A stretch of DNA of 63,496 nucleotides, filler included, from Trichosphaerium sp. ATCC 40318 (taxonomy: Eukaryota > Protista > Tubulinea): the NCBI GenBank assembly GCA_038496445.1. It is 3 parts of 3 records of this genome, joined end to end, with 100 filler letters (N's around TTAATTAATTAA, not from the genome) between each part and the next. Parts side by side here need not be neighbours in the genome. Positions count along the whole stretch, not along the records: positions 27,441 to 52,699 come from JALMLS010000284.1; 2 more parts are not named here. One strand, given 5' to 3'. Below the pieces are notes generated by a model. That model did not search any database. It was not told where the DNA came from and saw only the letters and a list, made by a program, of their open reading frames with translations. The position numbers were made by a program, and so were the translations under genes. This document shows positions 27,441 through 51,424 of the stretch, piece by piece (within the stretch, counting starts at the first letter, position 1; every line of letters starts with the position of its first letter).

Positions 27441-28207
27441 AAATGTCAATGGATCAAAATATCATACTTGTAATGGTACAAACGCAGAAGTTGGTGAACT
27501 ATGTCACAAGCAACTTTCTATCAACGGACGTTCGCTAAACGTCCAATTCTTCCCTTCAGAGTGCGCAGCAGCTGCAGCTAGGGATCCTGAATGTGCAGGC
27601 CATGTATCAATATACGGAGGTAGTCTATATGTTGGCTCTAAACGAAGTGGAAAATGCTACTGCCAAAAAGGTAGAGTGTTGTAATGGGTGTCATCGCATA
27701 TCTAGAAATGAACGTTGGACATTATTCGATGTTGAATACTTGTAAACCTATAACAATAAAACCATCCTTGTGAATTAAGAGTACACTAAATCGTTGAGTC
27801 TTGTGATCTGTGACAAACATTACTTTTATTGGAAAAAACCAAGAATCAAACAAATGACGCTGATTCAATTTTTTCCTACGCCTAGGACGCACTTGGATAA
27901 CTCTCAAGTATTGGTGTATAATTAATTGTTTAGTTTGTCATATATGAAGACGTATGCTTCTTAAAATAGTGAGGAACTATCAATGCACAACAACTAGTTG
28001 TTTATTACAAATCCGAGCTAGTAGTTCTTGAACGATTGCTAGTATAGATCAACCAATACACTAATCAAAGATGCTGTCATTAACGTATTACAGCGGGCGA
28101 AAACTCCTAACGTTTTCCCATCATACAGCCTTGAAATTTCTATTAATAAGCTACAAAAGACATATGAGTTTGTTTTTGTGAAATGGTCGAGCACTTTATT
28201 TGATGTT

Positions 28208-29760
28208 TTACAAAATAGTTACAATGTTAGTAAATGTTTGTTCTTGTGTTGCATCATTATCGAATATATTATCATCATAAAGAACTGCTTGCTGGTCAAT
28301 AACAGTATTAATATGAGGAGTGAAAGTATCACCAAAATCAAGACCAACAAGAACACCATAACGACTAACAAGAAGGTTTGTTAAAACAGTTTCCAATGTA
28401 ACTTCATCAACAATAACACCTTGAGCATGTACAGAAAGTCTTTGTAACCTTGGTACCATACTACTATTAGCTAGAGACTCAAAGAAGTTTACTTTATCAG
28501 AAATTGATGCATCAGCATAACCAAGAGTAGTAATAGAAGAATTTGGGTTGTTAAGAGCATCTAAGAAAAGCTTGTTGTAACTTTCTTCGAATCCAGGAAT
28601 TTCATGGCTAAATCACGTGTAAGTGTCAAATGTCAAACACCAAAAAAAATCAAAAATTCGAGAAAACTACGATCACGTGTGTTTTGTGAAACGTCGGGTT
28701 TTATCCTCAAGGCATGTAAAACTAATTTACATCATAATATAACGTAAATGATGTTGTAACGAAGCTGTAGCGTCAGCAGAATAAAAACTTCTTTTCAAAA
28801 AAAAAAAAAAAGAATTTCACGACAGGTTTGGAAGCGCTTGACAACAAACATATCCAAATATCTAAACGACTGTGTTACGTACTTATTACAGAACCTTATG
28901 AGAAGAGTCTTCAATGATGAATTATACTTTATAGACTTCATCAATACATAGAAAGTCTCCTTCTGAAAACAACACCATCCAAACATAAATACGTTAAAAC
29001 ATTTCTTTCAAGCCTATAAGTCATAGCTTTTGTTATAGCCATATCGATAACATATCCATTATTACTCAACCTTGTAGCTTTTGTAATATTCCTACAAAGT
29101 ATCTTCTTTATAAGGTCAAAAGAGAGGAACTGAAAGAGACCATCTTGCTTGTATTTCGAGATAAGGATCAATCTAACTTCTGACCATGTGAAATCACTTG
29201 ATACCTTATTTATAGTAGATACACGCCAACCAGATGCTTGTTCCGAGTTTACGAAAACGTTTATAGCGTTTATAGTAATATTGCCGTTATACCTTTTAAT
29301 AAATACGTTAATGAATGCGCTATACGATAAACAGCGGAACAATGGCATCGTTGTGGTTTATTTGCTAAAAACCGACAACTTTTTATTAAAATCATAATTT
29401 GAAGCCTTTTTCTAGTCTGCGATGGTGTGTAGTATAAAATAGCGAATGTTTGACGCCGACGTACAAATCTGGATGATAATCAACTTGATACGGCGTTAAA
29501 CGCCCTAAACGCTTTGTGAACTCCGCAACCACCTCTTTTAACTTGTGTACACGCGTCTTCGGTATTAGATAATTTAGAACATTCTTGCGATCCCATACTG
29601 ACATACAAAAGCACTCTGGTTTGGATCCAGAGTCACGAAATATGAATGTTTTGCCTTTTGCTTTTTTACCATGTACAAGAAGGCTTTGCGCATCTTCTTC
29701 CCTTAGTATTGGAAGGTAGAAACCCATAATGCCACCCCAGAGTTGTTTACGCAACCGCAA
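28208..29760 (-). CDS. SH2-LRR gene, left-arm copy (contains indels)
   Basis: Inverted copy of 37187-38734, with frame breaks near 28960 and 29340 relative to the right-arm copy. Confidence 0.6.
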
Positions 29761-30023
29761 CTGTAGGCTGAAGAAAATACAAGACTTCCATTGTGACTTT
29801 TCAAAGTTATTTTTTTTTATTGAGATGACTTCTAACCTTCGAATACCTCTTCAGCAGAATAACAAAATGAGTCAGCTCAGTAACTTCGGACTTGAGTCAA
29901 ACTACAAGGACTAAGACAGCAACATAACACGTGCTATGTTTGTATCAAGTAGAAATACTGCTGTGATTTGAACTATTTATTTAACTACAATTTGCCATTC
30001 ATGTTTCTCAACTAATGAGTTGT

Positions 30024-30839
30024 TTATTTGACTGAAAAAGTCCACTGTGTACTTCCTATGGTTTCAGGCATATTACCAGTGTGCTTTAGTGATGAATCAT
30101 TAAAAACAACAGAGTACATTCCGGCAAGAATATTATCAGAAACCCAAACAATCGTTGGGCGTTTTTGTTTAGTCCACTTTCCTTTACGACTCTCAATACA
30201 TCCTGGAACGATTTCTCCTTGTTCATTCTTTACTATAAAGTCAGTACCAGATACTATCTTGTCCAACAAGATGGTAAAAAAGTCATCTCCACCAGGGTAC
30301 GAGAAACGTTTGAATTGCAAAGATATCTCCACTTGTGACTCATAAGGACAATCAGGTATCTCGTGATGCTGTAGTACAGCCTTGCAGTATGGTAGCCTAC
30401 CGCAGTGCTTACAAACATCCTCAGATCTCTTGTCGTGTCTTGTTGTAGGGCACTTTTGTTCAAACTTGAAACGTTCGCTGTGAGTATGTATCTTATCCCC
30501 GGATGCTCTTGTTTCGTATTTCACTCGCGTGAGGAGTGTAGTAGGAGGTGCTAGGCCTGCTCCAAGAGCGAAGACGATGAAAACCTCATTCTTCTCACCT
30601 GGAACGAAACCAAGCTCTGATACTCTTGCGAGAGGACAAAGCAGTTGTCTTTTGAATACACAACGGTCCAATGAGGCAACGCTAACAGTTTCTATTGTGT
30701 TGCCGCTGTAAGAAGGGTTTTTAACCAAAATAAGGCGTTTTGCGTATTCCCAGAGCATTTCAGGTTGTTTGCTCAACTCCAGGGTTACTTTGTAGCTAGA
30801 ACCGCTTAAAGCCTTTATAGTGATTGTAATATCAGTCAT
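30024..30839 (-). CDS. Ubiquitin-like / Ig-like protein, left-arm copy (271 aa)
   Basis: Intact ORF nearly identical to 36107-36922. Confidence 0.8.
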   Translation of the reverse strand: MTDITITIKALSGSSYKVTLELSKQPEMLWEYAKRLILVKNPSYSGNTIETVSVASLDRCVFKRQLLCPLARVSELGFVPGEKNEVFIVFALGAGLAPPTTLLTRVKYETRASGDKIHTHSERFKFEQKCPTTRHDKRSEDVCKHCGRLPYCKAVLQHHEIPDCPYESQVEISLQFKRFSYPGGDDFFTILLDKIVSGTDFIVKNEQGEIVPGCIESRKGKWTKQKRPTIVWVSDNILAGMYSVVFNDSSLKHTGNMPETIGSTQWTFSVK

Positions 30840-31029
30840 TGCTTGTGTTGTATTGCTTTATTAGTTTGTTTCGAAGGTTAAAAGGAAATCATGAGAACTT
30901 TTCGTAGTATTCAACTTTTCTAGAAATGACGGTTGGTTTTCTTACATTAGAAGTATGTGAGCGAAGATACCCATGTATTCTAAGTAGGCGTTGATAACAA
31001 AGTTCAAGAACACATGAAACATTTTCAAA

Positions 31030-31979
31030 TAAACCCGTATGTGTATTGTATATTCACGTGAAGTTGTGCATTCTTCAAAACATCCTGAGCTTTGTTTGTG
31101 ATAAAAACCTTCTTGTATTTTTTTTTCAAGTAAGCTACCTTTCCTGTATCTCCTACCAAAGGTTATTTATAAAACCCAAAACAACATGATCAAATAATTA
31201 TAAACCACATACTGCAATAAACAAGAATAGGTGTTTTAGCACATGTTTTAATCTTTCTTATACTTTTCACTAACTTTTCTGCTGCAAGCTCATCTCCATC
31301 ACCCTTACGATAACTGTTTGTGATAATACGTAACCTGTTGTTACAAAACCCTTTAAACTTTTGAATCCATGCCAAAATCTCAGATGATGACTTCATGCTC
31401 AATACCTTTTTTTGAAGTGTTTTTGTTAAACAGAGCCACATGTCTCAGTTATTTTGTTGAAGTACCTCTGTTTTCTTCTGTCGTTTTCTTAATAGCTCCA
31501 CTATCTTCATATTTTCATTTGATAGATTGTTGTCAACCCATAATACAAGGCACTTTGCATCTCTGTACTTGAGTTTATATGCCTTCATATTAGCACTGTC
31601 TATTGCTTTATAATACACAAGATATCGTGGGAGAATCTACTGCCAGTAAACAAGTACTCAATGAGTGTCGATTTGCAGGTACTTGGTTTTTTGAAAAGAC
31701 GACAATCTCATTTTGGTCTATTTTGTCATCATAACCGCATGGGAATCCATTTGATTTAGTGATAACATAGTGAGAATCGTATCCTTTCTAGAAAATGTTC
31801 AGTAGTGAACCATCAATCTACAAGCTGAAGTCTACCAGCAGTGCTTCTATAGTACCTTGCATTTCTTTCCTAAAAGGCTTTTGGGATCATTCACTACAGG
31901 TTTCTCTGTTGCAGGGTATGGGTTTCCCATCATTACCCATGATATTAACATGCACGGGTTCGTACTTTGACCCCATTCA
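31030..31979 (-). pseudogene. Inverted 3' fragment of the ROCO-PARP gene (C-terminal half of PARP plus receiver-like domain)
   Basis: Reverse complement of 35052-35990. Lacks the HGT and GIYF motifs. Confidence 0.8.
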
Positions 31980-31994
31980 AAATGAATGAATTAG

Positions 31995-34900
31995 CAGTTA
32001 AACATTTCCAAACAACGTATTGGATGGCCTTAACAAACCTGCCGTCAACACACACATATTGTTGAAGGAGCAAATTATACCAACTATACATTTATTGACC
32101 AATTTGAAGCAAAAATAATGATTGTGGGTCATGAAGGTTCAGGTGACCACATACTCTATTGGATGTTACTAAATTCTATTGATTTACTAGGAAAGACAAC
32201 ATTGGTGAGGAAATTGGCAAAAGAAACAGATACAATAGCTGATTCTACAATTGGGTTTGATACCTCCAATCTCAAGTTAGCTTTTTTGTGCTGGCGTTGG
32301 TTTAACATGATTTAGATTCAATGGCATATCATTCACAGTATTGACTTTGCGGCCAGATAGAATATAAAGGTTACATAAGTATTTTTTCACAAAACAACTT
32401 GCCATTTACATTATTGTTGTACGTCAATGGTGTCATCACAGTCGTTCAATTAATACTATTTATAGATTGACTTATCTTACCAATTAAAACACAGCAAGCA
32501 CACCTCAAGTACTGGTGTCATACTCTATCTAAGGTTCTGCATGAAAAAGATTCAAAATTGTATTCAGTCATTGTATTTGGATCCAAACTGGACATCTGCT
32601 CAGGCGATCTAGAAACTAGTAAAAAAGTCCTACAGTATACTGGAATATCACTTGTACAATATCAATGCTTGGACGGTATTGCCCACACATTTGGAAATTT
32701 TCGCTAAGCTAGATTTTCTTAGGTGTTAAAGCTCTTGTCAAAATACTAGAGAATCAAGCAAAGTTTATGAAGTCTTATTATCCACGAGTATTATTGATGA
32801 ACGTTGATATAAAAACAGCACTGAAGAATAGTATCACCAACAAAGATAGCCTAAAAGGTAACATCTTATCAATGTATGTTCTTATTTACTAGCATGCCAA
32901 TTCATTCTGAAAAAACTTTACACAGCAAGCAAGTGATGAAGTTGCTACCTCCAAGTTGCGTAATGGCTCCTATAGAGTTGGTTGCCGCTTTGAATTACCT
33001 TCATTCTATTGGTAGTATCATGTTTGATGAGGTACATTTCTTCTCACAAACATCAAAGTAATTTCTTTCTTTAGTCATCTTATATGGTGTGTTTACATCC
33101 TCCTATTCTATCTAGCATCATGAGCGCTTTTTTAGCACCGAGAGAACATTTGAATAGATTAATGGAAAGCAACAGTCATAGTCATTGTGCTGTATTCACC
33201 AATTCAGAGGTTAAATCCCGAATCTCTAAGCTGTATCCAAACTGCACTTCACGTCAAGTAAAACAAGTGATGAACTTCTTAGTGCAGATGTTGTTTTGTG
33301 TTTGCTTGACAAAAGAAGAGAAGGTAACTGTTTTTTGTGGCCAGCATAACAACATATAGGCAATTTACGGTACCGGTGGATACATCATAATCTCATTATT
33401 GCCTAAAGTGGATATGCTTTACTTGCCTCCATTGACCAACAAGGAGCAAAAAATCATGTTAGTTCAGACTAAAGAGAACAAAAAACCATCTGTGTCGCCT
33501 CAAGTATTTTGTTTGTCCAAGTCACCAAAAGAGTGGAAGATATTATCATATGTACCTACAACAGACAGCAAAGTCATACAAAAGGTGATCAAGACAGTCG
33601 CCATAAACAAGAAGCATAAACAAATAGTACGTCGATTATTAAGACAAGCATTAATGAATCCTAAGGCGCTTCCTACTAACTATGAGCACGTGCCACACAA
33701 TTCAAAGTTCTTGGCGTTCGAATTCAAATCACAAGATCTATCAGTAGATGTCTTTAATGATTTGCAAAGAAGATTGCGAAGTATGTCATCAACCGTACCA
33801 CCAAAAACTAACACTTAAAATAGAGTTCCAAAACAAAGAGTTCCGCTTATTTTCAAACTTGATCATACTATCTGATTTTTATGGCAATCTTATCGTTTTG
33901 TATTACATTGATAATACAATCAAAGTTGTTATTAGAGGCATAGCACCGTGGTTATGGACGGTACAACAATAGAAAAAGAAAGAACATTTATTAACAGCTT
34001 ATTTGTTAGGAATGTCTTGACCCTTACTTAAACCCATTAAATATAGTACCATCTCAACTATGTCCGGTTAGAATACAAAGTGGACAGTTTTTGAAGGTTA
34101 TGAAATGCCCATATCAGTGCAAGAAAACAAGTAAGTGTCACCATAGTAAAACACAACACATATAACCTGACGTGTATAGAACATATTATCACTACATCTC
34201 ATTTGAAACAAGGTTATCCCATGCTGAAAGATGGGAGGCATCACCTCTGGAGTAGCTTGCATGGTGAAGATTTCTTAAAAGCAGGCGACTGGAGTACACC
34301 TAAGAATTGTCCTGGGTTACGGATTACCTTTCTTACAAAAAATGAAAAGAACAAGGTATAACCCCTATATATATCTTTGCTTTCTCACTGAAAATATTGA
34401 CAAAAGGAACGTTATGATGAATACCTGAGGGCTTGTAATATTTTTTATAAGTTTATGGGAACAGAAAGCGAATCTTTCTATAAATTGGAAAAGATTGCAT
34501 TCTTGGACAATCCGAAACTTGAAGCCAACTTTAAAAAACAGTACCAAGTTTTTGTGAAAAAAGTGCTTCAATCAGATCGATCAAGTGAGCCAGATAAACA
34601 ATATGTTCATTTGTTATTTGGATTTCTTGTTTAATTGCTTTAGGTTCAAAGGACAGTGTCACAGTGGATAGTATAAGTAAATCACAAGAAAGAACTCTTA
34701 ACATTTGAAGAATTATGTGATGCACGTTTCTGGAAATGAGCAAATCAACCTTATACCTGGATTACATGGCACATCAGAGGCATGCAATAAATCAATCCGG
34801 AAGTAGCGTTGTACTAACTTATGCTTGAGTAGGAAACTAGCTATAAGATTGCATGTAGTAACTTTAGAGAACCACATGAAAACTCAAACAAGAAAGATCC

Positions 34901-35967
34901 AGGGTATTATGGTAAGGACAGGATGTTGAATGAAAATATATTAGCTAAAATTGACATAGGAGACGGCATTTACTTTACTCAATACCCTGATTGTGGTATA
35001 TAGAAATTTTTTTGATAAATGTGTAACAACTGGTATAGGGAGGAAATATGCTGAATGGGGTCAAAGTAGTACAAACCCGTGCATGTTAATATCATGGGTA
35101 ATGATGGGAAACCCATACCCTGCAACAGAGAAACCTGTATTGAATGATCCCAAAAGCCTTTTAGGAAAGAAATGCAAGGTACTATAGAAGCACTGCTGGT
35201 AGACTTCAGCTTGTAGATTGATGGTTCACTACTGAGCATTTTCTAGAAAGGATACGATTCTCACTATGTTATCACTAAATCAAATGGATTCCCATGCGGT
35301 TATGATGACAAAATAGACCAAAATGAGATTGTTGTCTTTTCAAAAAACCAAGTACCTGCAAATCGACACTCTTTGAGTACTTGTTTACTGGCAGTAGATT
35401 CTTCCACGATATCTTGTGTATTATAAAGCAATAGACAGTGCTAATATAAAGGCATATAAACTCAAGTACAGAGATGCAAAGTGCCTTGTATTATGGGTTG
35501 ACAACAATCTATCAAATGAAAATATGAAGATAGTGGAGCTATTAAGAAAACGACAGAAGAAAACAGAGGTACTTAACAAAAAAAACTGAGCCACGTGGCT
35601 CTGTTTAACAATAACACTTCAAAAAAAGGTATTGAGCATGAAGTCATCATCTGAGATTTTGGCATGGATTCAAAAGTTTAAAGGGTTTTGTAACAACAGG
35701 TTACGTATAATCACAAACAGTTATCGTAAGGGTGATGGAGATGAGCTTGCAGCAGAAAAGTTAGTGAAAAGTATAAGAAAGATAAAAACATGTGCTAAAA
35801 CACCTATTCTTGTTTATTGCAGTACGTGGTTTATAATTATTTGATCATGTTGTTTTGGGTTTTATAAATAACCTTTGGTAGGAGATACAGCAAAGGTAGC
35901 TTACTTGAAAAAAAAATACAAGAAGGTTTTTATCACAAACAAAGCTCAGGATGTTTTGAAGATTTAA
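31995..35967 (+). CDS. Multi-exon Roc GTPase-COR-PARP-like ADP-ribosyltransferase-receiver-like fusion; 5'-truncated, several indels
   Basis: KIMIVGHEGSG|KTTL (intron 32143-32190), STIGFD, VFDFA(G)Q, GSKLD. COR-like ALNYLHSIGSI..LHPPILSSIM. PARP LHGTS (34765), YG|DGIYFTQ, GYDSH, NEIVVF..|ILPRYLVYY. Then VLWVDNN..RIITNSYR..PILVYC. Confidence 0.75.
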
Positions 35968-36106
35968 GAGAATGCACAACTTCACGTGAGTAAGAAAACC
36001 AAGCGTCATTTCTAGAAAAGTTGTTTTTTCATTGAATACTACGAAAAGTTCTCATGATTTCCTTTTAACCTTCGAAACAAACTAATAAAGCAATACAACA
36101 GAAGCA

Positions 36107-36922
36107 ATGACTGATATTACAATCACTATAAAGGCTTTAAGCGGTTCTAGCTACAAAGTAACCCTGGAGTTGAGCAAACAACCTGAAATGCTCTGGGAAT
36201 ACGCAAAACGCCTTATTTTGGTTAAAAACCCTTCTTACAGCGGCAATACAATAGAAACTGTTAACGTTTCCTCATTGGACCGTTGTGTATTCAAAAGACA
36301 ACTGCTTTGTCCTCTCGCAAGAGTATCAGAGCTTGGTTTCGTTCCAGGTGAGAAGAATGAGGTTTTCATCGTCTTCGCTCTTGGAGCAGGCCTAGCACCT
36401 CCTACAACACTCCTCACGCGAGTGAAATACGAAACAAGAGCATCCGGGGATAAGATTCATACTCACAGCGAACGTTTCAAGTTTGAACAAAAGTGCCCTA
36501 CAACAAGACACGACAAGAGATCTGAGGATGTTTGTAAGCACTGCGGTAGGCTACCATACTGCAAGGCTGTACTACAGCATCACGAGATACCTGATTGTCC
36601 TTATGAATCACACTTGGAGATATCTTTGCAATTCAAACGTTTCTCGTACCCTGGTGGAGATGACTTTTTTACGATCTTGTTGGACAAGATAGTATCTGGT
36701 ACTGACTTTATAGTAAAGAATGAACATGGAGAAATCGTTCCAGGATGTATTGAGAGTCGTAAAGGAAAGTGGACTAAACAAAAACGCCCAACGATTGTGT
36801 GGGTTTCTGATAATATTCTTGCCGGAATGTACTCTGTTGTTTTTAATGATTCATCACTAAAGCACACTGGTAATATGCCTGAAACCATAGGAAGTACACA
36901 GTGGACTTTTTCAGTCAAATAA
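36107..36922 (+). CDS. Intronless ubiquitin-like N-terminus plus C-terminal Ig-like (Big_5/SbsA-like) protein
   Basis: MTDITITIKALSGSSYKVTL...VFIVFALGAG resembles a beta-grasp Ubl, then CKHC..C, and ISLQF..FIVKNEHGEIVPG..GMYSVVF..WTFSVK. Confidence 0.6.
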   Translation: MTDITITIKALSGSSYKVTLELSKQPEMLWEYAKRLILVKNPSYSGNTIETVNVSSLDRCVFKRQLLCPLARVSELGFVPGEKNEVFIVFALGAGLAPPTTLLTRVKYETRASGDKIHTHSERFKFEQKCPTTRHDKRSEDVCKHCGRLPYCKAVLQHHEIPDCPYESHLEISLQFKRFSYPGGDDFFTILLDKIVSGTDFIVKNEHGEIVPGCIESRKGKWTKQKRPTIVWVSDNILAGMYSVVFNDSSLKHTGNMPETIGSTQWTFSVK

Positions 36923-37186
36923 ACAACTCATTAGTTGAGAAACATGAATGGCAAATTGTAGTTAAATAAATAGTTCAAATCACAGTATTTCTACTTGATA
37001 CAAACACAGCACGTGTTATGTTGCTGCTATCTTAGTCCTTGTAGTTTGACTCAAGTCCGTAGTAACTGAGCTGACTCATTTTGTTATTCTGTTGAAGAGG
37101 TATTCGAAGGTTAAAAGTCAGCTCAATAAAAAAAAATAACTTTGAAAAGTCATAACGGAAGTCTTGTATTTTCTTCAGCCGTACAG

Positions 37187-38734
37187 CTGCGGTTGCGTAA
37201 ACAACTCTGGGGTGGCATTATGGGTTTCTACCTTCCAATACTAAGGGAAGAAGATGCGCAAAGCCTTCTTGTACATGGTAAAAAAGCAAAAGGCAAAACA
37301 TTCATATTTCGTGACTCTGGATCCAAACCAGAGTGCTTTTGTATGTCAGTATGGGATCGCAAGAATGTTCTAAATTATCTTATACCGAAGACGCGTGTAC
37401 ACAAGTTAAAAGAGGTGGTTGCAGAGTTCACAAAGCGTTTAGGGCGTTTAACGCCGTATCAAGTTGATTATCATCCAGATTTGTACGTCGGCGTCAAACA
37501 TTCGCTATTTTATACTACACACCATCACAGACTAGAAAAAGGCTTCAAATTATGATTTTAATAAAAAGTTGTCGGTTTTTAGCAAATAAACCACAACGAC
37601 GCCATTTTCGCTGTTTATCGTGTAGCGCATTAATTAACGTATTTATTAAAAGGTATAACGGCAATATTACTATAAACGCTATAAACGTTTTCGTAAACTC
37701 GGAACAAGCATCTGGTTGGCGTGTATCTACTATAAATAAGGTATCAAGTGATTTCACATGGTCAGAAGTTAGATTGATCCTTATCTCGAAATACAAGCAA
37801 GATGGTCTCTTTCAGTTCCTCTCTTTTGACCTTATAAAGAAGATACTTTGTAGGAATATTACAAAAGCTACAAGGTTGAGTAATAATGGATATGTTATCG
37901 ATATGGCTATAACAAAAGCTATGACTTATAGGCTTGAAAGAAATGTTTTAACGTATTTATGTTTGGATGGTGTTGTTTTCAGAAAGGAGACTTTCTATGT
38001 ATTGATGAAGTCTATAAAGTATAATTCATCATTGAAGACTCTTCTCATAAGGTTCTGTAATAAGTACGTAACGCAGTCGTTAGATATTTGGATAAATTTG
38101 TTGTCAAGCGCTTCCAAACCTGTCGTGAAATTCTTTTTTTTTTTTTTTGAAAAGAAATTTTATTCTGCTGACGCTACAGCTTCGTTACAACATCATTTAC
38201 GTTATATTATGATATAAATTAGTTTTACATAAAACCCGACGTTTCACAAAACACACGTGATAAATGTGATCGTAGTTTTCTCGAATTTTTGATTTTTTTT
38301 GGTGTTTGACATTTGACACTTACACGTGATTTAGCCATGAAATTCCTGGATTCGAAGAAAGTTACAACAAGCTTTTCTTAGATGCTCTTAACAACCCTAA
38401 TTCTTCTATTACTACTCTTGGTTATGCTGATGCATCAATATCTGATAAAGTAAACTTCTTTGAGTCTCTAGCTAATAGTAGTATGGTACCAAGGTTACAA
38501 AGACTTTCTGTACATGCTCAAGGTGTTATTGTTGATGAACTTACATTGGAAACTGTTTTAACAAACCTTCTTGTTAGTCGTTATGGTGTTCTTGTTGGTC
38601 TTGATTTTGGTGATACTTTCACTCCTCATATTAATACTGTTATTGACCAGCAAGCAGTTCTTTATGATGATAATATATTCGATAATGATGCAACACAAGA
38701 ACAAACATTTACTAACATTGTAACTATTTTGTAA
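37187..38734 (+). CDS. Multi-exon SH2 + LRR-like protein
   Basis: SH2 signature REEDAQSLL..KTFIFRDS..FCMSV..NYLI. A GTACGT intron (~37482-37535) joins in frame to ORF 37552 (RNI-like SIKYNSSLKTLLI). A second intron ends at ~38334 before the HEIPGF...VTIL* exon. 5' end uncertain. Confidence 0.65.
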
Positions 38735-40044
38735 AACATCAAATAAAGTGCTCGACCATTTCACAAAAACAAACTCATATGTCTTTTGTAGCTTATTAAT
38801 AGAAATTTCGAGGCTGTATGATGGGAAAACGTTAGGAGTTTTCGCCCCGCTGTAATACGTTAATGACAGCATCTTTGATTAGTGTATTGGTTGATCTATA
38901 CTAGCAATCGTTCAAGAACTACTAGCTCGGATTTGTAATAAACAACTAGTTGTTGTGCATTGATAGTTCCTCACTATTTTAAGAAGCATACGTCTTCATA
39001 TATGACAAACTAAACAATTAATTATACACCAATACTTGAGAGTTATCCAAGTGCGTCCTAGGCGTAGGAAAAAATTGAATCAGCGTCATTTGTTTGATTC
39101 TTGGTTTTTTCCAATAAAAGTAATGTTTGTCACAGATCACAAGACTCAACGATTTAGTGTACTCTTAATTCACAAGGATGGTTTTATTGTTATAGGTTTA
39201 CAAGTATTCAACATCGAATAATGTCCAACGTTCATTTCTAGATATGCGATGACACCCATTACAACACTCTACCTTTGTTTGGCAGTAGCATTTTCCACTT
39301 CGTTTAGAGCCAACATATAGACTACCTCCGTATATTGATACATGGCCTGCACATTCAGGATCCCTAGCTGCAGCTGCTGCGCACTCTGAAGGGAAGAATT
39401 GGACGTTTAGCGAACGTCCGTTGATAGAAAGTTGCTTGTGACATAGTTCACCAACTTCTGCGTTTGTACCACTACAAGTATGATATTTTGATCCATTGAC
39501 ATTTCTCCAGAGGCCGTTTGCTCCATTACAGGTAGAGTTTACCCTTTCATTTGTAAGTGTAGGTACCTTGGGTAGTTCAATTGTGCTCGGCTCGCGGTCA
39601 CAATTAACACAATCGTCAGAAAGAGGCCATTTTGGGATTACTGATAAAACACTATTCAATTTAACAGTGTCACAATCAATGCATTTGTCTCCGTGTTTCC
39701 ATGGAATGTGTTTTGTCGTTGGTGGTACGTACCCAGGGAATATACGCCCTGGGGTTTTCATGAAGCAAGTTGCTTGATATGCTGGGTCATCTGGGTATAC
39801 AATTTCGTTGACACCAAAAGTATCAGAAGGCAGTCTAGCTCTAACATAAAAGCAAACATTAATATCCTCTGGTGCTTCAGTTTCTATTGTCATATTGAAT
39901 AGGTTCATGCACGAAGGGTCAACAAGACCAGCTTCTTCGCTGTAGAAATTTGCTACTGATAAAGGCATAACAGCCACACCAGCACAGTTGGTTGTACACC
40001 TTCTTTGGCAGTATGCCAAATCGTTAGAGACTACTCGACTGCAA

Positions 40045-42020
40045 CAGGTCTAAAATTCTCAAGCTGTTTTTATGGTAGATACCATGAATTTGTGGTATAA
40101 TTATACCATTGATTCCAATTTTATACCACAAATTCCAGTATAATATACCATAAATCAAAGGATTTATACCATGAAACAGCCAAATTATACCATAAATATA
40201 CAGTAGAAAGTGCGAATTTATACCATATTTTTTCACCTGAAAAAATGCATTATATGGTATAATTCTACCATAAAACATGGTATAAAACACAGTATAATAC
40301 CATAAAGCCTGGTATATTATACCTTAAAACTTGGTATATTATACCACAAAACCAGGTGTATTATACCGTGTAAAAACTGTTCTAAAAATAAAAACACATT
40401 TATTAATACATCTTTTTTTTGTTTACATCCGTGACCTTTAGTTTTGCCCATGTCCTTTTTTGCAGTGATCAAATAACCTTAAAAGAACAGATCGTACTTG
40501 CTGTAAGTGCATTGAATGGATATAGCATGAAACCTAAAAGAAGAGTTAGCGCCGGCTTGGTTTCTTGTACACAAAATAAATAGTCGTACAAAAATTGCTG
40601 TTTTGTTGTGATGGCAGCACTGAGAGTAACAAATGACCTGCACGGTGAAGCCAAACTTGACTAAAACAAAGAAATGAAAATAGCTACCAACCTCATCGGA
40701 AACGAGTTCTAGCGGAATAGTACCTGGTTGGGCGGCTAACATGTTTTGTTTTTTTTATATCACCTATTAAGCCTGTAAAACCTATGGCAAACAGCTTTAA
40801 AACAACTACTTTCTAGCATACCTTGTGTTGTGTGGGCGATAAACTGGTCAAGACTTAGTTTTATGCCCTGGCTTAGCCAATTAGTTTACAATATCACTCG
40901 TAAGGTCAACGCATGGGTGCAGAGCCTAAATGCTATCTGTTCCGGCAAATGCGGGCATTTAGTAGGAAAAAAACCAAAAAAATCCAAAAAAATCCAAAAA
41001 AAACCAAAAAACTCGAAAAATGGGTAAGCTCTGAAACAACTTTGCCTTATAACACTACTTGCGCGGTTTAACACACATTGGGGCATATATCAAGAATGTC
41101 AAAAAAAAATAAATAATTTTGCTCCTGATTTGGTAAATGAGGCTGTATGGCGTTGATTGAGTGTAAAAATGCCTATGGAGGGGAGAAAAAAATGAGAGCC
41201 GGAGAAAAAAACCTCCAATTGGAGGTTTTTTGCGAATGGGCATTTTTTGAGCGCTAAACGCGTTTTTGGTGTGTCTACCACTGTAGCGTTCTAACATGGG
41301 GTACGTGGAGTGGTTTCTTCCTCAAATACCATTAATCAGAGAAAGTTGGCCAATTTATCCCTAAAACGCCTGTAATTGGGGCGCGTTACCAGATTTCTCT
41401 CTTAAAACTGTTTTTCACACATTTATGTGCCAATTATGTTCAATAACGGCTACTGTCAAAGCATTGTGTGGTATGGCATTTGCGTAGGTCCATATGCTAT
41501 TAAATCAAGTGCAGACCAAGTGAGCTTTGACTAACTTATACTTATACAGTATAATACCACGGTATAATACCACATTTTATGGTATAATTATATGGTATAA
41601 TGCACGGTATACAATACTTTAAAATACAGTATAATACCATGGTATAATACTGTGTTTTATGGTATAATTATATGGTATAATGCATGGTATAATATACTTT
41701 AAAATGCAGTATAATACCATGGTATAGTACCATGTTTTATGGTATAATTATATGGTATAATGCATGGTATAATATACTGTAAAATGTGGTATAATACCAT
41801 GGTATAATACCATGTTTTATGGTATAATTATATTCTATAAATTGAGATATGGTATAAACATGGTATAATGGCTGTTATACCATTTGTCCAAAAAACATGG
41901 TATTATACCATATTTTATGGTATAATTATATGGTATAATTATGGATTATACTGAGCTTGTACCATAAAAGGTGATTATACCATAAAATATGGTATTATAC
42001 CATGATAATTTTCAGACCTG
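40045..42020. mobile_element. Non-autonomous TIR element A (~1.98 kb), 2-bp TSD AA
   Basis: Ends CAGGTCTAAAATT / AATTTTCAGACCTG, flanked aa|...|aa, with many GGTATAAT/ATTATACC subterminal motifs. Excising the element plus 2 bp restores DCSRVVSNDLAYC. Confidence 0.9.
41547..41832. repeat. 80-bp tandem repeat (~3.6 copies) inside element A
   Basis: Units start at 41547, 41627, 41707 and 41787 (cagtataataccatggtataat...). Confidence 0.85.
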
Positions 42021-42924
42021 AATCTACAAAAAGGTGTCAACAAAGATTCGTTTGTATTAATCATATACGCTTACCTCCTGCCGAACGGTATTCTGGGAAA
42101 TAACAATGATCTATGCGTCTAAAATAAAATAAGTTTTCGAACACTACAATCACGTGATTCAAGTCTAAACCAGTAGATTTACATAAAATGAGGTCACGAA
42201 AACGACCAAAACTAGTCAAAAAAAAAAGGCACTATAACGTATGGTATCGTACGCGTAAGATTCTGATTCGTCTGCAACACCATAGATCTCTTCAACATTT
42301 TCTTCAACGTAATCAACATCAATACAATCCCTGTAACCTCTCCATAGCCAATGAACGATGTATCTACCTGTACCAGCTCGGCCAGGTATAGTAAATTTAG
42401 CCATATCAGCATCTCTAGGTTGTCCTGTGAGATGTTCTGCTTTAAAGATGGCTTCAACCCAAGGCATATCTGGATGTTCATATTCAGCGTAGTTATTCTC
42501 GTGAAGGTTTTCCTTGTATTTGAATAACGTTGCGTTAACACCCCAACCACCAAAAGCTTCTGGTCTAGGAATAAAGTCTCCATCTGTGCTTAAGATCTCG
42601 TCACCAAGTGGAGCGTCTTTTACTGCATTAGGTTCACGATAAGCGAAACGTCTGTGAAGGACTTCAAGTGTCTTTACAGCTCCGGCAGGTGCGTCATTAA
42701 AGTACTTTGCAAATAGAGCTTAGTTGTTTAGCTTCAACTTGTCCTCGTACTTCTGGTGCATGATAATGAAGTAAGATGTACTGCTGTGGCCTTGAGCCCA
42801 CTCCATCTCGAACTCTTGATTTGGTCCAACTTGAACATGAGGATATTCTTGATTTACCGGAGGACAAGGTGTTTCTGTACTTGCGTATGGACGTCTACTA
42901 AGACTGAACATCCAGTTATGTCCT

Positions 42925-43983
42925 CAGGTCTAAAAATTAAAGTGGTATATACCAGTTTTTTTATGGTATATACCACTTTTTTCAACAAAATGGTATATGA
43001 ACTGGTATATACCATTTTGAAATACCACTTTTTTTAAAAATTAAGTGAATAAAAAAGTGGTATATAGAAGTGGTATATACCACTTTTCATTCACATAATG
43101 AGACCTTCTAAAAATGGTATATAAAGTGGTATATACCACTTTTTTATGGTATGTGGTATATACCACCTTTTTATTGGTATATACCACTTTTATGGTATGC
43201 TTCAAGAAGGTCATTAAGGCGCTTTTTGGTAATGGGTTTTCTTGTTGAACGATCATAGACGTCATACATTGAACGGTGCGTAGAGACCTTAGTATATCAT
43301 AGAATCTAACCATACCAGGCTCATTCGAACCGCAGGACCTGATTCCAGTACCTACAGTAAGGAAACTATATTGCAGGTATTATACAGACGTTCGTGGGTA
43401 CCAGACAAAGTTTTATTTTATTTTCGTTTGATATACATTAACCGACCTCCGTAGGCCTTAGTAATTGATGGATTCAGGTGGAACCACTTTCATTAGGTGC
43501 GCAGCATGTTTTTACAGTAGGTACAGCAAGCTCATGGAGATGGACGAATTTTCCAGACGCCCATAGTAATGTAACTGTAGTGGACATTGTCCAAAACTTG
43601 TAACTCACAAACTGTGTATTAAATAAAGTGTATTTTCTGGAATTGCAGGTGTACCATAAGTAGGCATAAAGTGGTATATAAGAGTGGTATATACCATGAA
43701 AAACTGGTATAAAAAAGTGGTATATAAGTGGTATATACCTAAAAAAAGTGGTATAAAAAAGTGGTATATTTTTTTTTTTCTGGTGAAAAAAAGTGGTATA
43801 TTTTCTGTTTTTATACCTCTTTTTTTTGTATATTGTTGGTATATTTGGTCAATATACCACTTTTTTTGGTATATTTCAGTCAAAATATACCACTTTTTTG
43901 GTATATACCATAAAAAACTGGTATAAAAAAGTGGTATAAAAGTGGTATATACCAAAAAAACTGGTATATTTTTTTTAGACCTG
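42925..43983. mobile_element. Non-autonomous TIR element B (~1.06 kb)
   Basis: Ends CAGGTCTAAAAA / TTTTTAGACCTG, with arrays of the palindromic GTGGTATATACCAC near both ends. Confidence 0.9.
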
Positions 43984-44002: not shown

Positions 44003-45033
44003 CAGTAGTAAAATAGAAATGGAAATTTTTAAGTAATCCACCCTGTTTTCCTATGGGAAAAGTAGACGGAAAAACTCTTCCTTAATTCCCATTGAATTTA
44101 TATGAAATTCCGTAAGTATTACTCATAGAATTCTTAGAGTATTACTTTTGGAATTGTGTATGTATTTTATATAGAATTCTCTATGTATTCTTTATAGCAT
44201 TTCTTAATGTATTTTTTGTAGATTTCAATAAAAAATACTTTATAAATTACACAAAATATTATTCGATACTTTGGTTCAGATTTAATGCAAAGTCATTTTA
44301 TTTATTGATCATTACAAAATACAAACATCCTAAATAATACGTACAAGTTAATACATCGTGTCTTCATAAACGAAAGAAGTAATTTGATCGCATTTGGTTT
44401 TGAGAGCCTGAACAATAATTAATGCGTTTGTAAATGCTAAATTAAGAACACATAGGGTTTTTTGATAAATTAAGTGGAAATAAGCTTTAAAAACAACGTA
44501 CTTGGAGTTAATGCTTTAAATACATTCTTTAATGGTGTAATAAGGCTGTTGCAATGCTTTAATCATCCTAAAACAGATAAGTAAGAGATATTTATGTTTA
44601 AGTGATTTTCCAAACCACCTAAAACATGTTCTCCGTTACTTTTTGGATTAACGCACTTTAACCTGTACCATTGGTTTTTTCACCTTTAATAATAGCATGT
44701 GGATATTGTTCGCTAGAAAAACCTATGTACCTAAGGTGTCGATGGTTTTTTGCAAATATAAAACTAAACCCTAACCCTAACTTAATTTGTACTTTCATAA
44801 ACCTCAACCCTAGCCCTAACCCTAACCCTAACTAAATTAGTACATTATTTGGTGGATTTTGTACAATAATTCTGAAAATTCCATATTTAAGGGAATATTA
44901 TGGTAATTCTATCAAAAATCCTGCCATAAAAAAAAATAAAAATAAGAATTCTTCATAAATTACCTTAAAAATCCCTAAAACAAAGGAATTTAGTGGGATT
45001 TATATCCAAAATCCCGTTTTCATTTTACCACTG
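44003..45033. mobile_element. Non-autonomous TIR element C, copy 1 (~1.03 kb)
   Basis: Ends CAGTAGTAAAAT / ATTTTACCACTG. Near-identical copy at 58571-59602. Confidence 0.9.
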
Positions 45034-49692: not shown

Positions 49693-51424
49693 ATGCATCA
49701 ACAGCTTTTAATCTCAGTAGTAATACTCTTTTCGCTGTCTATCATAGATTCCAAAGAGTTTTCTCTACCCGGCGATGATCTATGGCCGACCACGACTGAC
49801 GTGGAGTTATTCAAGTCAACCATCAAAGGTGAAGTATTCGAAAAAGGAGATGATCTTTACAAATATTCTATTTTTACGTATAATCTTCGTACTGGTCCTC
49901 CACAACCTCTTCTTGTTGTTATACCCGAGAACGATGACGATATTATAAGCACTTTGGCATTTGCTGTTAAGCACAATATCAGAATTGCTGTAAAGAGCAC
50001 AGGACATCATCAAGATGTTAGGTATAATCTATATTATTTAAGGAAATAACGTTCTTACATTACCCTTAGAAGCTCTGTTGACGATGCTATTCTTATATTC
50101 ATGAAGAAATATAACGACAAGGAGTTATTCGAGGAAGCAAAACAAATAAAAGTTGGACCAGGTACGCTAGCAATGGACCGATTGTTTGTCAATTGCTAAT
50201 AATTGTTAGGACAAACATGGGGCGAAATACAAAACTGGCTTGGTGAAGAAAGTGGCAATACCTTAGTAGCTTCAACCGGTGCTGATCCAACTGTTGGACC
50301 TGCTGGATGGGCTCTTGGCGGTGGTCATGGACGTTTGACACGAATGGTTGGCTTAGGAGCGGATTTGATTGTATCCATCGATTTAATCCTCGCTGATGGC
50401 ACACCAATAACCGCTTCAGCTGATAGCCATCCAGAGCTATTCAGAGCGCTGAGAGGGAGTTCGGGAAATCCGTTCGGAATCGTCACTTCCCTTACGTTCA
50501 AGGTATTTGAAGATCCTGGAGTTGTAACAGAGTTCAACGGAGGATTCCTCATTACTGACGAACGCTTATCAAGACTGGATGCGTGATGCTCCGAACAATG
50601 CTGGTGCTTATTTCATCGCTGTTATAGACCCTGAAACAGGTGCTCCTGTTGTGACCATAGATGCGTATTGTATAGGTGATCCAAAAGAGTGTACAACTGC
50701 ATTGGAGCCGCTGTCGAAAATACCTGGTTGTGCCTTTCTTACATGCAAAGTTCAGCAAACACATGACTCATACTCCGACTTTATGAAGGCTAATAACTAT
50801 AGCGATGTCGGAGGAGCTGTTAGTATGTATATGATGTCAACAGCTGTCGACTTAAAAACAGATGGTCAGATGGAGAAGATTTCGAAATGGTTAAACGACT
50901 ATTCAGATACAGAATGGCCTGGCGCTTTAATTGGTTGCTACTGTAATTCTGTTGTTGGAGGTTATAGCGGTACGCTTGATCCTCTTGGTAAAGAAACAGC
51001 AGTAAATCTAGCTTTAAGAAAAGCGTCAATCGCTATCACGTGTTATGTAGGATGGGATGTCGATAAAGGAAAACCTCGTCCTGACTTAATAGAAAAGGCT
51101 GATAAATGGGCAGACACTGTATTGAAACCAACAGGCATAAACAACTTTGTATATTGGAATGAACCACAACATAACTTTGTATCTGATGAGGATTGGCAAA
51201 TAAGTTACTATGGCTCAATCGAAGCCTACAACCAACTACTATCTGTCAAGAAAAAATATGATCCTGACTATGTCCTTACTTGTTATCATTGCGTAGGATG
51301 GGAGGATGTTGAAAACGTTGATCCTGCTGTATGTCCTGATGGATGTTCTTGTTCCAACCAGAAGAAAAACGGTGTTTGTGCTCATAAAATACCATACAAC
51401 AAAGTTGTAACCAACGAGAATTAA
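49693..51424 (+). CDS. Secreted FAD-linked oxidoreductase (berberine-bridge-enzyme-like)
   Basis: Signal peptide, AVKSTGH, TVGPAGWALGGGHG, ELFRALRGS..FGIVTS, YWNE..YYG..LLSVKKKYDP. Two introns near 50020-50210 and one apparent 1-bp frameshift at ~50560. Confidence 0.88.

Follow-up and report, generated by a model that had tools for sequence, protein, structure and literature searches.

We analyzed a window of 63,496 nucleotides (nt; filler included) from Trichosphaerium sp. ATCC 40318 (GenBank assembly GCA_038496445.1), confining the analysis to the piece between positions 27441 and 52699 (record JALMLS010000284.1). On the plus strand of this piece lies a gene, lacking its 5' end, that is predicted to encode in one chain a Roc GTPase, a COR region, an ADP-ribosyltransferase (ART) of the PARP family and a C-terminal domain with a receiver fold (Table 1). 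Three-frame translation and splicing gave a model with 20 introns of 36 to 68 nt (median, 48.5 nt), 19 of them bordered by GT-AG and one by GC-AG (34780-34832), and with no stop codon in its 993 residues. A splice model with seven frame breaks was dropped; introns 32874-32925 and 34585-34643 remove two of these, leaving five. Two long spliced frames were unbroken: the first, of 594 codons (32489-34699), covers the second half of Roc, COR-A, COR-B, a linker and the first ART strands, and the second, of 295 codons (34702-35964), covers the ART core and the C-terminal domain.

Domains of the Roc-COR-ART gene

A preliminary description, made from the sequence alone, had read this stretch as a ROCO protein with a PARP-type ART and a receiver-like domain, and the three-frame translation and splice model placed the Roc, ART and C-terminal motifs that it cited at or near the positions given. 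It had also named an alternative, two separate genes with transcripts ending between 33800 and 34300. We rejected the two-gene reading because the COR-to-ART junction falls within one frame: this stretch lies inside the 594-codon frame, and homologues also join Roc-COR to ART. Exon-by-exon searches of Pfam, PDB and Atlas were mostly blank, the individual exons being too short for Pfam, and support for the domains was therefore drawn from homologues, which match the Pfam models for Roc, COR-A, COR-B and PARP. The spliced model, carrying an X at every break, was compared with homologue sequences, and it aligned with locus L020 at 34.6% identity over 712 amino acids (aa) (E 7e-129). Run against the unspliced window, a hidden Markov model (HMM) of the homologues matched 12 exon pieces in collinear order. 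In a shuffle test against locus L007 (200 shuffles, score versus shuffle maximum), the values were 140 versus 53 for Roc, 138 versus 52 for COR-A, 90 versus 43 for COR-B and 108 versus 49 for the linker.

The Roc exons scored weakly by themselves yet were collinear, and alignment with L007, L003 and L018 brought motifs G1 to G5 and the Roc-type DF(A/G)GQ and h-x-FF signatures into register. At the sequence level, G1 to G4 were shown to be intact: G1 (GHEGSG^KTT, 32127-32199) is interrupted by the first Roc intron and is followed by G2 (STIG, 32244, with the Thr at about 32247), G3 (DFA, 32343) and G4 (GSKLD, 32579), with G5 at about 32666. An intron in the G1 loop common to this gene and locus L005 was considered and rejected, since the phases differ. 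COR-A and COR-B directly follow Roc in the same chain, the arrangement that places the protein among the ROCO proteins. COR-B ends with a CP-x-x motif (CPxC...CxxH in relatives). The gap between COR-A and COR-B is a variable loop of the family; in L018 it holds a Cys-rich, zinc-ribbon-like insertion (residues ~380 to 470), to which the insertions of the window gene and of L007 are unrelated. Homologue searches with COR-B and the linker, which were limited in length, gave no new relatives.

A PF00644 match in the homologues and the histidine-tyrosine-glutamate (H-Y-E) triad place the ART in the PARP family (ARTD). The triad residues of the family profile (codons in the window gene: His, 34765; Tyr, 34971, in GIYF; Glu, 35325) aligned in register with those of PARP2. 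At the position equivalent to PARP1 K903 and PARP2 K469, the family profile has Tyr and the window gene Cys, and the loop of M890 is one residue shorter. PARP3 and PARP4 are H-Y-E enzymes with mono-transferase activity, and the K903A substitution makes PARP1 a mono-transferase (PMC10711553). Because the K903 acceptor site is lost, the ART probably carries out mono- rather than poly-ADP-ribosylation, as judged from sequence. The H-Y-E triad of the preliminary description stood, but the triad by itself does not imply a PARP1-like output. No BRCT, WGR or helical domain was matched by Pfam in the single-frame homologues, and a helical autoinhibitory domain of the PARP1 type was not seen; the short linker with its Trp motifs appears to run straight into the catalytic strands. 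No homologue showed a protein kinase match after COR, and the PARP-family ART occupies the kinase position.

The C-terminal domain contains the motifs LWVDN (35491), IITN (35707) and ILVYC (35806). The AlphaFold2 (AF2) model of homologue P0022 showed a (beta-alpha)5 fold, with a predicted local distance difference test score of ~95 over residues 170 to 300, and its top structural matches were nearly all receiver domains (Foldseek, E 6e-4; VIA, Z 11.6, root mean square deviation of 2.5 Å, 113 residues). By alignment, with positions taken from the secondary structure of P0022, the acidic pair that follows beta1 is retained, but Asn stands at the phospho-Asp site (Asp in 1 of 19 rows), a Cys and no Ser/Thr closes beta4, and beta5 lacks the Lys. 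From the predicted fold and these residues, the domain is a pseudo-receiver, that is, a receiver fold without phospho-acceptor capacity. The receiver-like fold of the preliminary description was therefore borne out by the modeled structure of a homologue, and the phosphorylation residues were absent, as was any match to Pfam Response_reg in 23 family members. The domain carries a family motif, N-x-Y-R-x-x-D-G, in which the R-x-x-D-G loop is invariant and its own. The pseudo-receiver family is unannotated and has no Pfam model. Its nearest Atlas clusters were rotifer proteins, one of them a 146-aa cluster at TM 0.77 and another fused to a PF01129 ART. Pseudo-receivers without an ART were also found (P0006, L017:935-1450, P0003, P0004 and P0013); one Clydonella protein has the domain twice in tandem, and others carry it behind low-complexity regions.

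Table 1. Positions, strands and supporting evidence of the features of the piece
Feature	Position	Strand	Basis or remark
Roc-COR-ART-pseudo-receiver gene	31997-35967	+	Predicted 21 exons and no 5' end; model of 993 residues, X at 5 breaks
Roc GTPase	32106-32760	+	Motif alignment and shuffle test versus L007/L003; homologues exceed the Pfam Roc cut-off (39.2 and 49.9 bits)
Roc introns	32143-32190, 32276-32315, 32419-32465, 32676-32722	+	
COR-A subdomain	32761-33420	+	Homologue HMM match 33084-33332, 44 bits; L007 COR-A, E 1.3e-6
COR-B subdomain	33720-34130	+	HMM match 33823-33960, 33.8 bits; L007 COR-B, 31.1 bits; L001, E 7.7e-4
COR-to-ART linker, conserved, two invariant Trp motifs	34180-34406	+	Homologue HMM; shuffle test versus L007
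PARP-family ART domain	34407-35424	+	Homologues P0001/P0022 match Pfam PARP at 38 and 55 bits; best match of family profile PARP2, E 1.5e-9
Pseudo-receiver, (beta-alpha)5	35476-35964	+	AF2 model of homologue P0022, structure matches, alignment
Three frame breaks, one missing base each	32341-32370	+	
Frame break, one base short	32487-32488	+	
Frame break, one base short	34700-34701	+	
Left arm of inverted duplication	27441-31979	-	Copy of 35052-39504, cut by piece edge
Right arm of inverted duplication	35052-39504	+	98.8% identical to left arm
271-aa intronless open reading frame	36107-36922	+	Copy at 30024-30839 (-); same protein, exact, in MMETSP transcriptomes
SH2 domain exon of downstream gene	37130-37555	+	Pfam SH2, 25.2 bits (cut-off, 21)

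Relatives at other loci

The Roc-COR-ART combination was found in five divergent public loci, three of them with a single unbroken open reading frame (ORF) (L018, L019 and L020) and two with N-terminal leucine-rich repeats (LRRs). L018 has one frame of 1,015 codons in which the Pfam cut-off is passed by Roc, at 49.9 bits, and by PARP, at 27.1 bits, and the best matches of its AF2 model were LRRK1, LRRK2 and the Roc-COR of C. tepidum (E 2.5e-11 to 4e-10). In L019, 788 codons link Roc with the ART's first half, and in L020, 879 codons run from the G4 motif through COR and the ART (PARP, 45.9 bits) into the beginning of the C-terminal domain. Because L020 lacks the introns of the window gene except one, whose position and phase match those of intron 35569, it is probably the mRNA of a near relative, to judge by its sequence. 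L007 (the same as L005 and L009 to L014) encodes LRRs, Roc (39.2 bits), COR-A, COR-B (31.1 bits), PARP (E 1.2e-5) and the C-terminal domain, L003 encodes LRR_6, Roc, COR and ART, and L001 is an intronless contig that spans COR-B to the gene end. The N-terminal sensors that the preliminary description had suggested looking for in relatives were LRRs, which precede Roc in L003 and in L005/L009-14. Overall, the layout LRR-Roc-COR-ART-pseudo-receiver was shown to be that of a eukaryotic family, which is probably amoebozoan.

A search with the C-terminal exon gave 21 proteins. The best matches, P0001 and P0002, were MMETSP transcripts 68 to 72% identical over that exon, and P0001 comes from Trichosphaerium sp. 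ATCC 40318 itself (taxid 498012). At least three paralogues, ~63 to 72% alike, occur in the Trichosphaerium-like lineage. For P0001, P0002 and the 271-aa ORF, no contig was found. Among the loci, ART identity was only 35 to 53%, so the family is old and conserved, and together with the spread of GC content (34 to 58%) this divergence indicates that several distant organisms carry it. The H, Y and E residues were retained in 9 of the 10 members that cover these sites. In the ART of L003 (5974-6867), His is replaced by Arg while Tyr and Glu are kept, and this enzyme may be inactive or altered. The neighbors of the window gene were not conserved in relatives. No relative was found in viral and GTDB (prokaryotic) contigs by scans that detect close patterns only. 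A secreted or injected toxin, for which secretion or delivery domains and a bacterial or viral origin would be expected, was not indicated, the gene being spliced, eukaryotic and PARP-like, with no bacterial or viral relatives found. The ART tree did not group the loci clearly enough to name an origin or donor. A separate protein, of 1,032 aa (L008:11-3106), resembles a secreted-type receptor with a signal, LRRs, EGF and a transmembrane helix, followed by an ART without a pseudo-receiver; this ART belongs to the same broad subfamily (~32% identity) and stands where receptor kinases have the kinase.

State of this copy and its neighborhood

The gene begins 17 nt past position 31979, the point within an intron where the left arm of an inverted duplication stops. 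It is 5' truncated because this inverted copy of its own 3' end and of 4 kb downstream ends there. The arms are 98.8% identical (54 substitutions in 4,412 nt, with indels of up to 108 nt), and the left arm holds only the ART's C-terminal half, the pseudo-receiver, the 271-aa ORF and the SH2 gene. The junction of the arms is very recent or artificial. Coding differences between the arms comprised 13 silent and 9 replacement changes (pN/pS 0.14 to 0.24, p 1e-4), with a pN/pS of 0.15 on the ART and receiver exons, and the pattern extends to the headless ART fragment. This purifying selection on both arms means that both descend from working genes, either alleles or paralogues. At the gene end the arms also differ (35960-35990 versus 30940-31070) by indels of 9 and 108 nt, which alter the C-terminal residues as well as the 3' region.

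The truncation and the indels had been noted in the preliminary description, except for the break near 32487 and the inverted duplication, and it had suggested that this copy may be dead. We consider it probable that the truncation and frameshifts are instead artifacts of amplification and long reads. The published Trichosphaerium draft, whose GC content of 37.7% and mean intron length of 75 nt agree with the GC content and intron size found here, was made from REPLI-g amplified DNA with Nanopore and PacBio reads (PMC10521059), and amplification such as multiple displacement amplification (MDA) creates artificial palindromes (PMC6218980). Each of the five breaks lacks a single base and lies beside a run of identical bases, three of the five fall within 30 nt, and there are no nonsense codons; the chance that five breaks share one sign is 1 in 32, and the absence of stops is by itself weak evidence. 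The competing explanation, a real, recently killed pseudogene made by a genuine fold-back inversion and then five deletions, applies to this copy only and seems rather unlikely. In favor of a pseudogene, the arms diverge by 1.2% plus indels, which a simple single-molecule chimera would not show; the Trichosphaerium assembly went through three rounds of Illumina polishing (PMC10521059); no transcript identical to the ART-receiver part of the window gene was found; and, under decay, five indels without any stop are only mildly improbable (P 0.05 to 0.34). However, decay does not readily account for losses of the same sign crowded beside identical-base runs, for splice sites kept in 20 of 20 introns, or for purifying selection on the headless left-arm copy, which could not be acquired as a fragment, and the likely source DNA was amplified by MDA, a known source of palindromes. 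The conclusion about the family is independent of which explanation is correct.

The preliminary description had placed the gene in a cluster with ubiquitin-like (Ubl) and SH2-LRR genes on both sides. The SH2 assignment was upheld by Pfam, whereas no Pfam match supported LRRs in that gene or a Ubl domain in the 271-aa ORF, and the two flanks proved to be one neighborhood doubled by the inverted repeat. The SH2 gene (37130-38731, +) has a divergent SH2 core followed by open frames that are possibly LRR-like. A Cys-rich ORF (39201-40049, -), partly within the inverted arm, and a spliced gene that ends with a WRGYRDC motif (42219-42923, -) had no Pfam match. A predicted secreted FAD-binding/BBE oxidase (49693-51424, +) has a frame change near 50560 without a convincing intron, possibly an assembly indel. 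Satellite patches rich in TGGTATA (40080-40370, 41540-42010, 42940-43200 and 43660-43960), including an 80-nt unit in 3.7 copies, flank small genes, and short interstitial CCCTAA runs at 44765-44835 are telomere-like.

Proposed role and comparison with known systems

We propose, giving it an even chance, that the window gene encodes a one-chain sensor, switch and effector, resembling bacterial LRR-Roc-COR-TIR proteins and NLRs, in the cell-autonomous defense of a phagotroph, with mono-ADP-ribosylation as its output. In this scheme the LRRs would bind a ligand, for example a microbial or damage cue, and Roc-COR would switch its bound nucleotide and its dimerization, by analogy with C. tepidum Roco and LRRK2 (PMC4104024). 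The ART, in the kinase position of LRRK2, would then be freed to attach single ADP-ribose units, taken from NAD+, to its own chain or to a partner, and the pseudo-receiver would serve as a clamp on the ART or as an adaptor by way of its N-x-Y-R-x-x-D-G loop. Several paralogues combined with a member that lacks a catalytic residue are a pattern common in defense families. The defensive role is proposed because of this pattern, seen here in the paralogues and the His-less member, because bacterial LRR-AP-GTPase-COR proteins, which bear at least 24 interchangeable effectors (PMC8195603), provide a precedent, and because LRR-ROCOs have been proposed as immune receptors in brown algae (PMC11378527) and Acanthamoeba (PMC4053784). 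A more far-reaching version is tentative and somewhat doubtful: an undescribed NLR-like class of amoebal immune receptors in which LRR-Roc-COR arms a PARP-type ART and the pseudo-receiver senses nucleotide or ADP-ribose as a new regulatory domain shared with NAD-using conflict enzymes of rotifers and protists.

Several observations weigh against a defensive receptor. The N terminus of this copy is lost to truncation, so no LRR is visible here, and LRRs were seen in two relatives only, the remaining loci being cut by contig ends. One family member was seen per metagenome organism, and a large expansion was not shown. The AF2 models (P0022 and L018) had low confidence over the ART, and contacts between domains are therefore not readable from them. 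Additionally, Dictyostelium Roco proteins act in chemotaxis and cell division, not in defense (PMC4104024). These roles in chemotaxis and cytokinesis, with the strong purifying selection and a domain order fixed across very divergent organisms, would suit housekeeping signaling, in which a switch-controlled mono-ART modifies cytoskeletal or trafficking proteins in the manner of Dictyostelium Roco or LRRK kinases and ADP-ribosylation replaces phosphorylation. We regard that as unlikely, since the distribution is patchy (reports on Acanthamoeba and Dictyostelium and the PARP survey do not mention the family), there are several paralogues and a His-to-Arg member, and the nearest Atlas clusters of the pseudo-receiver are from rotifers, one of them fused to an ART.

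Other outputs of the ART seem less probable still. A suicide NADase, whose activation drains NAD+ or yields free ADP-ribose with no protein target, would fit an ART in the slot held by TIR in ~580 listed bacterial Roc-COR entries and the degenerate acceptor site; it is improbable given the retained catalytic Glu and PARP-like fold and given that PARP4, an H-Y-E enzyme without the acceptor site, transfers to proteins (PMC10711553). For a true polymerase that builds poly(ADP-ribose) scaffolds as PARP1/2 or tankyrase do, one can cite the full triad and PARP2 as the best solved relative. However, the Tyr or Cys at the K903/K469 site, the shorter M890 loop and the effect of K903A on PARP1 (PMC10711553) make this very improbable. 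If the proposed GTP-armed, PARP-type receptor is real, it would be the first GTPase-gated PARP and would give the PARP family a means of activation linked to a GTPase. Control of an attached enzyme by Roc-COR is an open question for LRRK2, and the swap of kinase for ART would give an independent test with an easily assayed use of NAD+. Such a receptor would also extend the logic of LRR-Roc-COR-effector proteins from bacteria to phagotrophic eukaryotes. The locus illustrates, too, how assemblies of amplified DNA hide such genes through palindromes and one-base losses.

In agreement with the preliminary description, which knew of no characterized example, no Roc-COR protein with an ART was found in the literature searched; subscription papers and the 2015 review of ART natural history were outside this scope, and absence is not proven. 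The source data of PMC8195603 held no COR+ART, COR+PARP or COR+REC combination among ~2,700 AP-GTPase+COR entries, and the Atlas neighbors of L007 included no PARP. The closest parallel in logic is the bacterial LRR-AP-GTPase(Roc)-COR-effector system (Kaur et al. 2021, PMC8195603), which likewise has an LRR sensor, a Roc-COR switch and a C-terminal enzyme, and whose TIR members also use NAD+. In contrast, the window gene is eukaryotic and intron-rich, with a PARP-family ART and a pseudo-receiver as effector. LRRK1/LRRK2 and Dictyostelium Roco1-11 have the same LRR-Roc-COR order and Roc-COR fold, after which come a protein-modifying enzyme and, at the C terminus, an accessory domain, while the family described here has an ART for the kinase and a pseudo-receiver for the WD40 domain. 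The brown algal LRR-ROCOs (PMC11378527) share the LRR-Roc-COR core in a non-animal eukaryote, and some have a C-terminal peptidase or DUF900; an ART was not reported in them. The PF00644 fold and the triad are shared with PARP1/2 and with PARP3/PARP4, whereas BRCT, WGR and zinc finger domains and the K903 site are missing and control, if any, would come from the GTPase. Similarly, the pseudo-receiver has the (beta-alpha)5 fold and acidic pair of response-regulator receivers without their phospho-Asp, beta4 Ser/Thr and beta5 Lys. Overall, the parts and the logic are known ones, and the Roc-COR-ART combination and the pseudo-receiver family appear to be undescribed additions to them.

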